Positions 22,701 to 31,700 of a stretch of DNA of 64,000 bases are shown piece by piece. The position numbers were made by a program, and so were the translations under genes. The notes beneath the pieces were generated by a model. It made no database searches and had not been told where the DNA came from. It worked only from the letters and a program-made list of their open reading frames with translations. The first letter of the stretch is position 1. Each line of letters opens with the position of its first letter. The stretch is from Diadema antillarum (taxonomy: Eukaryota), in contig NW_027270939.1 of NCBI RefSeq assembly GCF_040938485.1, positions 434,001 to 498,000 on the forward strand. The letters run 5' to 3'.

Positions 22701-25700
22701 TTTTCTTTTATGATGAACAATTGCTATTGGTTTTTGGCATTTATGGCCAGACTATACGAGGGCACCGTGAATTCAAAAAACTTCTTCATTATGGACAGCT
22801 GGCCCTGAGGGAACATTACTTACCGACTCAAGGACCAGTCCTAAACCAGGTGCACGAGGAATGTCCAGTTTCTCCTCACCAAATGCCCTCTCAATGATGG
22901 AGGGGGGAGCCAGGCCCCTTACTACAGCTACCACAAGACCTGAGACCACAAGAATGAAACAACAATGTGTGTTTAGGTACACATCTGTATCAATTTAGAT
23001 ATATCTATCCATCTGTCTGTCTGTCTCGCTATCAATCTATTATCTACAATGTATCTGTCAGTCTGCATGTCTATCCATCTGTCTGTCTATCTGTCAATCT
23101 ATCTATGATCTATCTATTTATCAAACTATTTGTCTGTCTGTATAATCTTGTGTATGAGCAATTAGTAATAATGGTCTTCACTGGAGATGTGGGGGGGGGG
23201 GGGAAACAGCATTATGATAATCTTTCTCTGAAAATAAATTTCACAAAGTCTCTTTGCTAGAAAAAACAAACAAACATATATATGTATAATATCTTCATGA
23301 TAAGAATGATGGGCTTGTATGCCATGCAATTACAGCAACATACACTTTCCAAACATGATCTTTATGCAATTGGTTTCAATAACTTGATTACAGGAGGATG
23401 CATCTCAGATGGAAAGTTATCTTGTTTGAAAGCAGTGCCTTTGCATCCCGAGACTCACCAATCATTTTGCGGATCTGATGGAGCATGAAGCTTTGACCCT
23501 TGACCTTGATGATGGCGAACTCGATTCCGTCATCGACAAAGCCTTTCTCGCAGTAGAACTCTTTCATGTACCTATTGGCACTGGGATCGTTAAACAGCCT
23601 GGAGATGTGGGGGAGAATACGGGCATTATAATAATCTTTCCCCAGAAGGAAAATAAATATCACAGATTCTCTGTGCTAAAACATGAATGAACTCTAATAC
23701 CTGTATTGAATTCAGTGTTAGAATCACAAATATGTGTATAAAGTATCAACAGAAAAGAAGTGTTAAAGGGCGATGTGGTATGATGGCCTGGACTGAAATC
23801 TACCCAATAAATGTAATATGATTAATTATTCCTGTTCAGTCAAATGCTTGCTCATACAAGGAGAAACACTTTCCACATGAATGTCCCCAGTAAAAAAAGT
23901 CAATAATTTGTGGACATGACAACTGAATTGTTTTGGTTTTGCATTTCAGTCCCATTTGCAAGACAAGTTACAGTATTCCATAACAATAATAAAAGAAAAA
24001 GATGGGGTTCAGCACAGTTTGTAAGCTAGTTGAGAGTTGAAGATTTAATTAACTTCTGTTTTACTCCATCCTCTTTAACAGCAGAAACATACAAGGGTCT
24101 GGCTATGGGTCAGTCAAACTCTTGATAATTCTATAATCTGGAGTCAAAAGGGGCCAAGTTTTCGATCCTAGCAGAATCTTCGTCAGTGGCAAAATGACAA
24201 ACAGGCAGGGAAAGCAATCACATATAAGGACTACACACAACAAGAACAGTCAGGAGAGGGCTAGGGACACAGAACAAAGGAAACAAAAGTGAAGGGTTGG
24301 AAATCATGGGCAAAGAGCCCAACAAGTAAAAAAGAAAGGGGGATTAAAGCAGGAGGGTGGACAGACAAGAGGTAGAGGAGGGTCAGTGATGATCCCGAGG
24401 ATCAAGGGGGCAACCTGTGAAGGATAAGGATGAATACTTAACCTGTTGGGCTCTTTGCCCTTGACTTCCAACCTTTCCCTTTTGTTTTCTTTGTCCTGTG
24501 TCCCTAGCCCTTCCCTGACTGTTCTTGTTGTGTGTAGTCCTTATATGTGATTGCTTTCCCTGCCTGTTTGTCATTTTGCCTCTGACAAAGATTCTGCTAG
24601 GATCAAAAGCTCAGGCCCCTTTTGACTCCATTTTACTCCATTAGCTCGCCACTATTGGATAAGCAGTTTTCAGCAGCTTTTTTTTGTTGCTACATTTAAT
24701 TGATAGATTAAACGAGAACTTACCTGTTTGTAGTTTGATCTCAATTATATGAGTAATATTACGGAAGGGATTACGTTGACAAGAGAGACCCGCTGACGCA
24801 TGCGCAGATTCCCCAATATTCGTAGAAAACCGGTCATGGCTAACGAAAACATAGATCAACGAGAACTTTCCACTGTAGTTTGAATACACAGGGAGGGAAG
24901 GGAGGGACGTAATCCCTTCCGTAATATTACTCATATAATTGAGATCAAACTACAAACAGGTAAGTTCTCGTTTAATCTATCAATTATACTTCGTAATTCC
25001 GTCAGGGATTACGTTGACAAGAGATTTTAAAGCCGTTAGCCATGAACGGCCTATGTAAATTAATGGCTTATCTATGCAGTAGGTATTTACCTGCATTAAA
25101 TGGCCCTGTAGTCAATGTGGGGCTGGCTGCCATTAATTCTGGTGGTACAGCTGTGGATTGCTTTTGCTCAGGATCACAGCTGCAGCATAACTTCTCCTCG
25201 TTTCCAGTGGTTTGTTGTAGAAATTTCTAAATGTCCTTTCTCCAGCCCAGCCTGCTTGTGCCAGAATTTGACTGATGGGCAAATCCGCACACCTTGCGGC
25301 TGATGTCGTAGCTGCTCGGGTAGAGTGGGCTGCGTAAACCTGAGTATTTATCCCTGCAGCTGAAAGCGTGCTCTTGATCCACCTGGCTATGGTTTGTGAT
25401 GTCACGCGATGATGAGGCTTCTTGAAGCTAATGAACAGGTAGCGCTCCTTGCCTCGTAATGTGCTTGTTCGCTTGATGTAGTGCTGCAGATAGTTCACCA
25501 CACACAGTCGTCTGTCTGGTGGGAAGGCCCTCATCGACAAATTGAGGTTAGCGTTTCCTGGCCTGCTGTGCTTTAAGAGGTCCTTGAAAACAAATTGCGC
25601 AAAGCTGGTTTTTAGCTGCATGTGGTCGAGGTGAAGATTGTGCAGCGACTGTACTCTCTGCGCAGAAACTAAGGCCATTAATGTGCACAGTTTCCAGGTC

Positions 25701-28700
25701 AACACTTTCAAAGAAAGTGTCTTTGCAGGTGCCCACCTACGAAGTTTATTAAACACTATGTTCACATCCCAAATCTCACGATATCTGGGTAACGGTGGGC
25801 GAAGATGAAAAACACCTTTAACGAAACGCGAAATGAGTGGATGTTTTCCAACTGGACAATTATCCTCCAATATCAAAAACGAAGAAAGTGCACTACGTGC
25901 ACTGTTGATAACACTGTAACTACAACTTTCATCATAAAAAAGAACACTTAAAAATTCCAGCACGTCATTTGCTTGTGCTGTTAGATAGTTCAAACTACGC
26001 TTTGTACAAAAGGACTTCCATTTCCTGATGTAAACCCCATACTGCTTTTTTGTAGATTTTCGCCACGATGCTGCGATGATGTCAACTGTTCTTGAATTCA
26101 GTCCATCTCTGCTTAGGGGTTTTCGCAGCACCTGAAACAGAGCAGATCAAGTCTGTCATGCAGGGGGTGAGGTTCTCCCGTTCCAGGGAGCGTAAGCAAC
26201 TCTGCACTATGTCTTAATAACATTGGTCTTTCAGTGGTCAGGGACATTAATACAGGGAACCATGGTTGGGTGGGCCAGTTTGGTACAACTACGATGCCTT
26301 TTGCTTTGTCCTGCCTAATTTTTTGTAGGCATCTTGAGATAAGACAGAAGGGAGGAAAGGCATAGAAATCCAATGGACCCCAATCGAGTGTGAAGGCATC
26401 TACATTTTCTGCCTCTGGGTCTGGCTGCCATGCTACATATCTTTCTACTTGTTTATTTAGCCTTGATGCAAACAAGTCGATTTCTGGGGTACCATAGTGA
26501 CTGGCAATTTCCTGGAATTTTGCTGGATTTAGCATCCATTCAGACCCATCGTTAAACTGTCTTGACCTGTGGTCCGCTTCTACATTTAATTTTCCAGGAA
26601 TGTGGGACGCAGTGATCCAAATGTGCTTATGTATGCACCATTTCCAAATTTCTTTTGCGGCATCATTACAGTTAGGGGACTTAACGCCTCCCATGTTGTT
26701 TAGATATGCTACAGCTGTAGTGTTGTCTACACGCAGCAAAACATGCACATCTCTTAGTTCTTTGCAGTACGACTTGAGACCATGCCCAGCCGCAACTAAT
26801 TCAAGATAATTGATGCCACTATGCTTTGCGTTATGTAGTTCCTTCTCACTCCATCTTCCCCCAGTACTACTGTGGAGGTTTGTGGCGCCCCATCCTGCCC
26901 CACTGGCATCTGAGCGCAATTCTAGATCTGCTTTCTTTCTTTGGATTGGTGCGAAGGCAGTGTGAATGTTCTCTACCCACCACTGAAGCTCCTGTTTTGC
27001 TTCGGTGGATAGTTCCATTTTTCTATCAAAGTGACCTTTGTTTGCCTTCAGAGCTTGAATTTTGTCTTTTTCCAGTTCACGATAGAACAATGGACCATAC
27101 TGTACTGCCGGAAAGCTTGCTACAATCTTTCCGATCACTCGTGCTACTTGCCTAATTGAAGGTCTATTCATATGTAGCAAGTTAGCGCACAGATCTCTGA
27201 TTTCTGTCATTTTTTCTTCTGGCAGACTGATAGACATTTCTACAGTGTCAAGCATAAAACCAAGGAATTTTATTTTCCTGGTCGGATAGAGCACTGATTT
27301 TTCTGGGTGCACCACAAACCCAAGATGTGTGAGAAGGCTTACTGTTGTAGCTATGGATTCCTTCAGTTTCGCTTCACTTTCACTGATCAGTATGGTATCA
27401 TCAAGATATCCAATAACGATGTGGCCCAATCTTCTCAGTGTTGCAAACACTGGTTTCAGTATTTTAGTGAACAAACGGGGGGCTGAGCTAAGCCCATTTG
27501 GCATTGCTTTGAATTGCCAACACTGGTCACTGAAAGTGAAATGTAGGAATTTTCTGTCTCCATCATGTACTGGGACTGAATAGTAGGCATCTCGAAGGTC
27601 GACTGAGGCTAAGAAATTGTTTGGAGATATCAATTCCAGTACTTTGTGAATATTGTCCATCTTGAAATGACGATACACAAGATACTTGTTTAACTCTGAC
27701 AAGTCCAGAATTAACCGTATGCCCCCATTCTTTTTGGGGCGTGGGAATACATTGGAGATGAACTCTCCTTCCACATGACTGCATTGCTCAATAACATTTT
27801 TTGTCTGCAGATTTCTGATTTCTTCATGCACACGAGCATTGTCAATTGAATTTCTCCGAAAGGAGTGAGGATTTCTTGTGCTTGTAGGGGGGAATTTTCC
27901 CTCCTTAAATTCCAATTTCATGCCAGAAATTGAGTTCAGAATGAATTGATCATGTGTCACTGTCCTCCAATTATTTCTAAATAGCCTCAGTCGACCTCCA
28001 ATAGGCCTATCGTGTTTCAATGTACTAGATCTAGTGCCAAGTCTAGTGTGATTAGGTAAGCAGAGATTACTCACCGTTTCGGCGGTATCAGCTCCTACTT
28101 CCTCCGATGGGAGTGCCCCCCTCGCTGGGCTGTCTGTTGAGTTGCCTGGCTCGACGAGCTCAGCGTTTGTGTGTGAGGTGGTGGCTGCCTGCCCCTCCTG
28201 TTGTAATTCTGGCCTAAAAAAGGTCCAGCAGTAGATCCAGCTATCGGTCTGTTATATGCAGCATGCTGAAAACCGCGTCCTCTCTGTGGATACGGCCTAC
28301 TGAGCGAGCGCTGATACGCCGCGATTGGTCTCGCCCTCCCTTGCGATTTCATGACTCCAGCTGCTGCTAGCTGTTGATCTTTCAAGTCCTTGACTTGTTT
28401 TCCTAGATCGTCTCCAAACAGTAGACGGGTAGCAGGGAGTGATGGCTTACACAAATGTGCAAATCTAGAGTTTATGTCTGGTTTGATCAGCTCCTTACGG
28501 AGACAGTTGAGCTCGAAATTCGCGTTGCAAATCAGAGCGAGGGCATCTTGCTGCGTATCAGACATGCGACCTGCTGAGAGCGATCTTGTGAACGCATTTA
28601 ATCCCTTTGTAAGCGATTTTTGCACCCGTTGTAGCTTTAAATCCCGACTCTTGGTCGCTGGTGGCAGAAAATCCCAGATAGGCGGATTCACTTTGGGCAC

Positions 28701-31700
28701 ATCGATGAGTTGACAATTGTTTGGAGAGGGATACTTTCCAACCACATCCTCCAGAACTTTCAGTTCGAGTTGGTGAGTCATGAGATAGGTAGTCGACTTT
28801 GCCACTTCATCGTCTATTGGATCCCCAATGTCAGTGGGCATCGCGAATTTAGCTGCTATGGTGGGGATCTCAAACTGTTCCACTTGGGACTGCGGGATCT
28901 GCTCTGCGTGGTCGAATCCAGACGCAGTATCGTCGTCATGATCTATCATGTACATATCCAGTTGCCCAGTGGGCGAGTTATCCGGCAAGTTCATGTCCGC
29001 GTGTGGCGCGGTTGGATAGTATGCACCCCGCATACTCATATCTTGCTCGCCACTGCCCGTGGCGGTCGCCATGTTGGCCGGCGAACGCGATGAATTTGCG
29101 GTCGCTTGTGGTAGAGCTTCGATAACTTTTGAAAGCAAACTTTCCATTTTGTCAAGCCTTTCGGCGAATTCAGTCATATGAGCAGAAGTTTTTTGCTGTG
29201 AAGATCCCGCTACGGTTTTGGCAGTACCTTTCTTCACCTTCGTATTACTGACCGACGAAGCGATCGTCTTCTTCGCGGTGTTACTGATAGCTACTGCGGC
29301 CTTACCGCTTGCGTGTTTTTCTACCGGGATACCGACCTTGCCGGTGCCCGGAACCAGCGGGCCAGCTTTAGCGGGCGCCGCTGGGGTATTGGGAGAGGCA
29401 GCCGTGCTCGCCTCCATACCGATCGTTAATTTTTTGATAACGGAAACGTGAAATATAGTCTCGAAAGTGACTTACACTTCGACTAAGAGACTTTAAGTTT
29501 CAATATTCCACTAAAGCGCTAACCTATTCTTGAGGATCGCGCCGATATTTTCAGGGGAAAAAACGGGCATCCGAAGCCGTGCTTCAGTGCAAATGCGCCG
29601 TCAACGAATTGGGGAATCTGCGCATGCGTCAGCGGGTCTCTCTTGTCAACGTAATCCCTGACGGAATTACGAAGTATAATTCTATAATCTGTCACAAAAA
29701 CTGCCTTGTTTGCTGATGCTGAGCAAGCCCAGTTTTATATCATGTGTACACTGAAAGCAAAAGGATTGCATTTTGAACTTCAATGCAAATTTTATTGCTA
29801 GTCTACACACTTGATACCTGCTTTTGGACAGTATCAACTCTGAATTCACTTAACAATACCCTCTTTCAAATTACAGGATGTTAATTGGGTCTGAAAAGCT
29901 TGGGCAATGCATCACGTTCTAATCTCCTTTACAGATCCTGTGAAAAGCTGATTAAAGGGTGTGTCAACACTGAAATGTACTGTGCACTTTATGGCGGCTG
30001 ACCCATGCCAAAGTTTGAATGCAAGAGATAGAGAGAGAATCAATATCCACTCACTTTCCAGAGGTGAAGTTGTGAAAGTTGTGGGTGCCAATGTACTTCT
30101 GTAATTGTGTATTCACTTCTGTCATCTTCTCATCTGGAAGGGGAAAAAACAGTAACACTGTATTTATACCAGTAACAAGTTACATCTTCGTCACTGCATG
30201 GAACTGAGATTCAGATTCTTAATAATTAACTTTCACTAAACGTGAGCTGCTGAAGGCCCACGATTTCACCTATCAAAACACAGATTATTTCTAAAAACAA
30301 TCAACAAATAAGACAATGAACACGTTGAAGACGAGTCCTGAGAATACTCGGGCAGGTGTCTATGGGAAATGCGTGTTATAGCTAAATTAGTCCGTCCTCA
30401 ACAGGTTAAGATAAAATTGACACTGGGTTAAAGTGCTTTGAAAAGTATTGTTATTATCCAGGGCTCCACACTAACCAATCTTTTTTTCTACTGTACAACC
30501 TGTCTGACAGACCAGTAGGTGCCCAGTTTTTCCATGTTTTACTGGTCCATTCCTGAAAACGTCTACTGGTCCGACAGTGATTTTTACTGGTCCCGGACCA
30601 TCGGACCTGTGCCAGTGAGCAGCGTTGTATTATCACTTGATATTTGGTCAAGAATATTTATTGAATGACAGAGCCGTCAAAATACTTTGTGAAGAGGGAA
30701 TTCACCTGTGACTCGGTATTTCTCCATAGAGATGTCCTCCAGGGGTGTGAAGGCAAATGTGGGCAGTAAGTACATGTAGGTTCTGTACTCGCAGTTATTT
30801 TTGCTGTTGAATCCCCCCGTCGTCCGCTTCACTCCTATCAGGGGGGAACACAAAAGAGGACAAATTCATTTCTTCACATTCATTCTAGATCAAAGATGAG
30901 AAACTATTGCTCATGTAAGTTTTGAGCTTGACTTATCAAGATGATCTCACATACCGTAGAGAAATGTACTTAGGATCTAGTACTGTATACGCCATATATT
31001 TAGCGAGTCTAAATTTTCGCGAATTGGGACTTACCGACGATTTCGCGAGTGGTTAAATTCGCGATCGTGGAGTGCTGTACTGAACGGAGAAATGTATACG
31101 TGTGGGTCACATTCATATCGGGATCAGAGTCATTATTTTGGCGTGTCTTTAATTTCACGAATAGCACCCGACTCGCGAAATTCGCGAAAATAAAAACCTC
31201 ACAAAATATTTGGCGTATACAGTAAATGGGGGAAAAGGTGTTTGATATAAAGAGACACTTGTTTTATTGTAATGTAGTGTTATGACATTCTGAGACATGA
31301 CAGCTTATTGTTTGTGTCCAAAGCACCTTATTGGTTAATACATATGTTAAGATGCCTATTTGTTTGGATAAATATTTTACATCTGATACAGAATGAGAAA
31401 TATCCCAGTGGGAGAGCAAGAAAAAAAAAGGGGAAAAAATGTAATAAAATAAGACATGACAAGACAAGGAAAGGCAAGACAGAAAAAAACATGAATGATC
31501 ATCCCTACCCATGACTTTAATAGCTTCTGGTAAGTGTTTGTTGATTTTCTCCACAAGATTGTCTAGCAGGAGGAGCTTGAGGGAGACGACCTGACCGGCT
31601 GCCGACACGCCCTTGTCCGTTCGGGCACACCGCTGGAAGTTCATCTTGCCCATGTTTTGACCGTGATCTGGAGGAATGGCACCGGACTTGACCAATGCCT

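Follow-up and report, generated by a model that had tools for sequence, protein, structure and literature searches.

How are the reverse transcriptase and the recombinase of a DIRS retrotransposon translated? The expression of pol and of the recombinase in these elements has so far lacked an explanation, and neither open reading frame (ORF) has a usable start codon in the families considered here. The question is raised by a DIRS1-like element on the minus strand of a stretch of Diadema antillarum DNA of 64,000 nucleotides (NCBI RefSeq assembly GCF_040938485.1, contig NW_027270939.1, positions 434,001 to 498,000 of the forward strand), hereafter the window, in whose numbering positions are given. 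We consider it likely, from the comparison of this element with its relatives, that a U_UUU_UUA heptamer close to the end of gag works as a site of -1 programmed ribosomal frameshifting, of the gag-pol kind known from retroviruses. The single slip site probably serves two products, Gag-Pol from the unspliced RNA and a Gag-recombinase fusion from a spliced one. The parts of the element on which this proposal bears are the following.

24697 to 29681 (limits approximate), minus strand: DIRS1-like tyrosine-recombinase retrotransposon, with the gene order gag, reverse transcriptase (RT)/RNase H/methyltransferase-like (MT-like), tyrosine recombinase (YR), inverted termini and an internal complementary region.
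29417 to 28095, minus strand: gag ORF of 440 aa, frame 0, with a basic tail after the slip site and its stop TAG at 28097-28095, from ORF reading.
28252 to 28254, minus strand: TAA, 30 nt upstream of the heptamer, by which the -1 (pol) frame is closed, read directly.
28215 to 28221, minus strand: U_UUU_UUA, a slippery heptamer set in gag phase and forming part of the invariant decamer CCUUUUUUAG (28223-28214), read directly.
28095 to 28251, minus strand: gag/pol overlap, with both frames open and without ATG in the -1 frame, from frame reading.
28251 to 26113, minus strand: pol frame of 712 codons, -1 relative to gag, with RT, RNase H and a C-terminal MT-like region and its stop at 26115-26113, from frame reading and Pfam.

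The element is a full DIRS1-like retrotransposon in which both an RT/RNase H and a tyrosine recombinase are found. A Pfam search of its proteins matched RVT_1 (1.1e-22) in pol and Phage_integrase (1.4e-7) together with Phage_int_SAM_4 in an ORF of 332 aa, gave no protease or rve (DDE integrase) match, and assigned no family to the gag ORF, which has a motif in common with the upstream ORFs of other DIRS families. The DIRS arrangement, i.e., inverted terminal repeats along with a complementary region inside the element that matches both termini, is present, the inverted repeat pairs being 24758-24817 with 29608-29667, 24982-25024 with 29639-29681, and 24697-24776 with 24907-24986. Regarding the C-terminal part of pol (..DLFAS..PPF..), it looks MT-like by eye only, a Dam-type match being absent from the window pol at E 0.01 or better; PF05869 (Dam) is found in several close relatives, and the pol proteins of relatives match PF00078 and PF05869.

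Read on the minus strand, the gag codons are CCT (28223-28221), TTT (28220-28218), TTA (28217-28215) and GGC, which sets the heptamer in the X_XXY_YYZ phase with the RT frame at -1, as an earlier note on this DNA had claimed. That note had also placed the TAA closing the -1 frame only 30 nt upstream (28254-28252), with the frame then open to 26113 and its first ATG well inside the RT ORF. Codon reading bears this out: the frame is open over 712 codons and its first ATG is codon 111 (..ISGMKLEF..), downstream of a conserved GGRLxxF..W motif at codon 85. The gag frame, for its part, continues for 39 codons past the heptamer to the TAG at 28097-28095. One alternative to a selected signal is that chance alone put a T-rich heptamer in phase within the overlap of the window copy, and for a single element such an event is not rare. 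Indeed, an in-phase canonical heptamer occurred in the 52-codon overlap in 15% of codon-shuffle trials, and the rate observed in upstream gag sequence (13 in 5231 codons) corresponds to an expectation of ~13% for an overlap of 52 codons. Taken alone, the window site is thus within chance expectation (~0.13-0.15) and the case rests on the comparison with relatives.

The closest of these are ~21 same-family copies, 96-99% identical, in this genome of 1.75 Gb, and the heptamer is kept in 21 of 21. The pol frame of 712 codons is fully open in six same-family copies and the family is transcribed. The majority of RNA reads differ from the window copy by a TAC insertion after 28022 and by a 3-nt deletion at 25194, indicating that most of the transcripts derive from family members other than this copy.

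More distant relatives were collected within and outside the genome. When the genome was searched in six frames with the N-terminal part of pol, hundreds of DIRS pol frames were revealed, in several length classes and 50-55% identical to the window query, from which one to five junctions per length class were taken and their frames analysed mechanically. Besides that of the window, seven families were considered (L053/L061, L055/57/62, L063/64/65/73/76, L066/67/69, L070/77, L071 and L072). The outside sample was obtained by a word-based protein search with pol, followed to the encoding contigs, in ENA, JGI, Logan and one NCBI assembly, and comprises the following loci.

L079, L080, L082 and L083: pol N-terminus 36-43% identical to that of the window, with CC TTT TTT AGG in gag phase.
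L081, 1485-1491 (NCBI GCA_029980105.1): A_AAA_AAC in phase, 12 nt after a -1-frame stop, where gag reads LAKNL.
L086, 1065-1071 (Logan SRR30713895): T_TTT_TTG, where gag still reads PFLG; its pol protein cluster has 326 member sequences.
L078, 426-3824 (Logan ERR6349604): gag and pol fused in a single ORF of 1132 aa, a shift being unneeded.
L084 and L085: broken copies.

Lack of conservation of the heptamer in sister elements had been named in the earlier note among the outcomes able to refute the site. The comparison favours the site: the heptamer and its phase are kept in all intact junctions (14/14), with U_UUU_UUA in 12 families, A_AAA_AAC in one and U_UUU_UUG in one. In each of these 14 junctions, a long upstream ORF occupies frame 0 and pol frame -1, and the two overlap by 100-295 nt. 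Broken copies, namely L068 (minisatellite insertion), L074/L075, L084 and L085, were omitted from the counts, although L084, broken as it is, still reads ..SFFR.. in the pol frame. In the within-genome families, TTTTTTA is in gag phase in each overlap, gag reading ..(R)PFLG.. and pol ..AFFRP...

To measure this conservation, 12 family representatives were aligned without gaps and anchored on the heptamer, eight from this genome (the window element, L053/61, L055, L063, L066, L070, L071 and L072) and four from other assemblies (L079, L080, L082 and L083). Ten bases, CCTTTTTTAG, are invariant and in the same phase (2.0 bits per position), the flanks are unalignable (0-0.5 bits at positions more than ~5 nt to either side of the decamer), and the pol N-termini of the families are 36-56% identical to that of the window. 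An identical decamer with the same phase and place in 12 families with such flanks, and functional substitutes in the others, make chance hardly credible as an explanation; on these comparative data, it is already refuted.

Several loci of the comparison deserve separate mention. The L086 site may be weak, or the copy dead, and folding revealed no local structure downstream of its heptamer. The L078 lineage, judging from its fused ORF, appears to have dispensed with the frameshift. The assembly that holds L081 also holds a second family, L082, with U_UUU_UUA. In the DIRS copy L068 (1381-1790, G000:C618), the end of gag is replaced by a minisatellite of tandem CCTGTGGTACTG-like units, ~400 nt long. 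Finally, a sister family of the window element (L024/L025, 75% identity) is degraded, with G_UUU_UUA and a T7-containing insertion upstream, and was set aside as uninformative.

In another alternative, the translation of pol and YR would not depend on gag but start in the -1 frame itself, at a non-AUG codon, by reinitiation or through internal entry, and CCUUUUUUAG might be conserved for another reason, either because it encodes an essential Gag PFLG motif or as a cis-acting RNA or cDNA element. The gag frame does read (R)PFLG in 13 families, including L086 with its altered heptamer. Moreover, a second gag-frame motif, (P)PHT(Q/Y)T(P), is found ~15-25 codons past the slip site in the window element (~28140-28185) and in L053, L055, L066, L070, L071 and L072, and its recurrence suggests that the Gag tail made only without a shift is itself under protein constraint. 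However, the codons for Pro-Phe-Leu are invariant while their synonyms are used freely elsewhere. With the pooled codon usage of these elements (CCT 0.32 of Pro, TTT 0.61 of Phe and TTA 0.15 of Leu), CCT TTT TTA is expected for Pro-Phe-Leu with a probability of 0.029 per family, and it is observed in 12 of 12 families, the synonyms never. L081 is without PFLG and yet has another canonical slippery heptamer, which, together with the invariant codons, argues that the nucleotide signal and not the peptide has been selected.

The layout of the -1 frame bears on the same explanation. In the window element, there is no ATG in this frame between its upstream stop and the splice donor described below. 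In the other families, the -1-frame stop lies 3-111 nt before the heptamer, and in two of them, L055 and L070, the frame opens only 3 and 6 nt before it, which implies entry into the pol frame at or after the heptamer and would place any independent start on or after it.

Two other features were considered and rejected. A polypurine tract on the other strand (AAAAAAGG, antisense) was ruled out as a reason for the conservation, the RNA template being the sense strand. A GGCC..GGCC palindrome surrounds the heptamer in roughly half of the families, where the loop of a hairpin could then contain the slip site; it is absent from L063, L071, L079 and L083, and was dropped because it is not conserved and follows from the R-P-F-L-G-Q codons.

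The homopolymer at the heart of the signal allows for yet another explanation, namely transcriptional slippage, in which RNA polymerase II, or the RT of the element while copying, would add one U in T6 (one A in the A6 of L081), so that a subset of the mRNAs would have gag and pol in a common frame, with no slip by the ribosome. Such a six-base run is present in both conserved heptamer types, and L086 retains T6 despite its changed seventh base. Slippage of this kind needs no set phase, yet X_XXY_YYZ is found in 14 of 14 junctions; nor does it need set neighbours, yet the CC before the run and the A and G after it are invariant in 12 families. Six-base homopolymers are also short for efficient polymerase slippage in eukaryotes. 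In the RNA reads, no indel was observed at 28215-28221 in at least 3% of reads, a weak bound with a summed mean depth of ~15 over three runs. We therefore hold transcriptional slippage to be very unlikely.

As regards the recombinase, polyA RNA-seq reads bearing the same species label (three runs) were examined for splicing and add two features to the element.

28074 to 26132, minus strand: intron of 1943 nt, GT (28074-28073)..AG (26133-26132), comprising nearly all of pol, from an RNA-seq joint.
26131 to 25133, minus strand: YR ORF of 332 aa without a usable start codon, from Pfam and frame reading.

The joint is seen in three reads in X8 and four in X9, which start at three and four different places, respectively, and the acceptor is ctctgtttcag/GTG (the slash marking the junction). 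The upstream exon stops after a complete pol-frame codon, whose last base is 28075, and the next exon opens at 26131 with the first base of a YR codon; in the spliced RNA, YR is in the -1 frame, 49 codons past the heptamer. The first Met of YR is residue 157 of the open frame (~152 from the splice acceptor), inside the domain. The splice joins YR, an ORF without start codon, to the -1 frame, and a single shift site is thus likely to serve Gag-YR as well as Gag-Pol. An intron-less genomic copy could mimic such an RNA joint and none was found: in 21 of 21 same-family copies, ~1769 nt are kept between the junction probe and the YR exon, as judged by coordinates, one copy having a 2.6-kb insertion and others small indels.

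This arrangement is not restricted to the window family. A phase-0 donor 5-41 nt past the gag stop and a phase-0 acceptor (..ttgcag/G) at the start of YR are found in six other families of the genome and in L081-L083, while for the seventh genome family (L093) the donor pattern used gave an acceptor only. In five of ten other families (L087, L089, L091, L082 and L083), ATG TTG CAG/ directly precedes the YR acceptor, in the YR frame and within the pyrimidine tract of the intron, and is possibly an alternative start on unspliced RNA in those five families. This ATG, three codons before the acceptor, speaks for independent translation of YR, but it is intronic and absent in six of 11 families, the window element included. 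Weighing this with the codon evidence and the layout of the -1 frame, we judge translation of pol and YR independently of gag to be unlikely, with a small but tangible probability.

The preferred explanation, a programmed -1 shift at the heptamer, can be set out step by step. Ribosomes translating gag would arrive at CCU UUU UUA. A minority of them would undergo a shift in which the tRNA-Phe in the P site and the tRNA-Leu in the A site move back by one base onto UUU UUU, and the -1 frame would then be read as AGG CCA GAA.., giving ..AGPF(L/F)RPELQQ.., with ..GPFLRPELQQ.. as the transframe peptide when Leu is decoded before the slip. Unspliced RNA is predicted to give a Gag-Pol fusion (RT/RNase H/MT-like). 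Once 28075 has been spliced to 26131, a -1 leader of 49 codons would be in frame with the tyrosine recombinase and give Gag-YR. We infer the slip, its efficiency and the two fusion proteins from the signal, its phase and conservation, the frame layout and the splice. DIRS elements being without protease, the fusions may stay uncleaved. The layout in question is CCUUUUUUAG, gag stop, phase-0 donor and phase-0 acceptor at YR. We lean, with some reserve, toward the view that a conserved slip site placed before a conserved donor forms a common gateway to two ORFs, and that this layout is ancestral to a large animal DIRS1-like clade.

One local RNA structure downstream of the heptamer has to be discussed.

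About 28199 to 28176, minus strand: small G-rich hairpin (GGAGGGGC..GCC..CCUC), a candidate stimulator present in the minimum-energy fold and starting 16-17 nt past the heptamer.

The earlier note had proposed this stem as a possible stimulator starting about 17 nt downstream. The stem and its position stand, being found in the minimum-energy fold, but it is not exceptional: the 120 nt after the heptamer fold at -33.7 kcal/mol (z -1.08), and 34 of 200 dinucleotide shuffles fold as well. The first 40 nt past the heptamer of the window element have a dG of -9.9 kcal/mol, at the 12th percentile of control windows. In 11 of 14 families, these 40 nt exceed control windows from within the respective element in stability (median percentile 0.14), a weak tendency in a stretch that is GC-rich. 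When 60- and 90-nt folds of 13 families were compared with dinucleotide shuffles, z ranged from -2.4 to +1.0 and none was significant. A G-rich hairpin of some kind is present in each family, with its start 8-17 nt past the heptamer, and none is common between families. A downstream stimulator is thus unproven, and any part played by RNA structure would have to be inferred. U_UUU_UUA is intrinsically slippery, and a low shift rate may be enough for the needs of the element.

Several points weigh against a programmed shift. Folding of the window sequence, with a search of stem-loops only and pseudoknots outside its reach, found no canonical stimulator at a spacer of 5-9 nt; the candidate stem stands at 16-17 nt, the folds are non-significant and no structure is common to the families. 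The six-base homopolymer of both conserved heptamer types is open to the polymerase-based explanation given above. The U_UUU_UUG of L086 still encodes PFLG, so that some protein-level constraint on the motif is possible. Lastly, the outside loci are represented by one copy each, and the sample covers a single clade of DIRS1-like elements.

The signal itself is of a well-known kind. In HIV-1, the gag-pol -1 site is U UUU UUA followed by GGG, and the transframe peptide starts FFR/FLR. The heptamer of the window element is identical and is followed by the same next bases (UUUUUUAGG), gag reads -FLG- and the -1 frame -FFR-, and in both cases the downstream ORF encodes an RT, has no start of its own and overlaps gag by ~150-200 nt. 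The two differ in three respects. The element has no stem-loop at the canonical short spacer, its candidate stem being found at 16-17 nt and non-significant. It has neither protease nor DDE integrase, and its fusion is probably unprocessed. Its splice donor, 140 nt downstream, leads the shifted frame into a second ORF, the tyrosine recombinase. To our knowledge, no slip site coupled to a downstream splice and serving two enzymes has been described in retroviruses or LTR elements.

More broadly, a gag(0)/pol(-1) overlap with an X_XXY_YYZ signal is also a feature of LTR retrotransposons (Ty3/gypsy, BEL/Pao) and retroviruses. DIRS elements form an order apart from these, characterised by a tyrosine recombinase, inverted termini and a complementary region inside the element; their RT/RNase H is held to be related to that of Ty3/gypsy (PMC3266345). 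The review concerned mentions overlapping ORFs in DIRS elements (PMC3266345). For Dictyostelium DIRS-1, which we compared by its published description and not by sequence, a +1 frameshift linking RT and YR has been suggested but "not determined experimentally" (PMC5006619). DIRS-1 (ORF2/ORF3) belongs to the same order of retroelements as the window element and likewise has overlapping ORFs and a frameshift suggested to link ORFs. However, the suggestion for DIRS-1 concerns RT/YR, a +1 shift and no named signal, while the window element has gag/pol, -1 and a conserved canonical heptamer. In the full-text literature searched, a frameshift signal between gag and pol is nowhere described for DIRS elements, in line with the remark of the earlier note that frameshifting was not established for them; older papers on the DIRS1 group (Goodwin and Poulter 2001, 2004, 2005) were outside this search and may hold a prior report. 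What the window presents is thus a known kind of signal, an HIV-type -1 slip site, in an element order where it is undocumented. The unusual part is the downstream splice, which would let a single slip feed two enzymes.

For the biology of DIRS elements, a deeply conserved HIV-type slip site offers a concrete and testable answer to the question of how pol and YR are expressed. If true, -1 frameshifting would be extended to a third major order of retroelements. A Gag-fused RT and a Gag-fused recombinase are then predicted, which bears on the assembly of replication complexes in elements that have no protease. Where annotation pipelines split the element into three genes (gag, pol and YR), as in the outside contigs, they would miss its real products.

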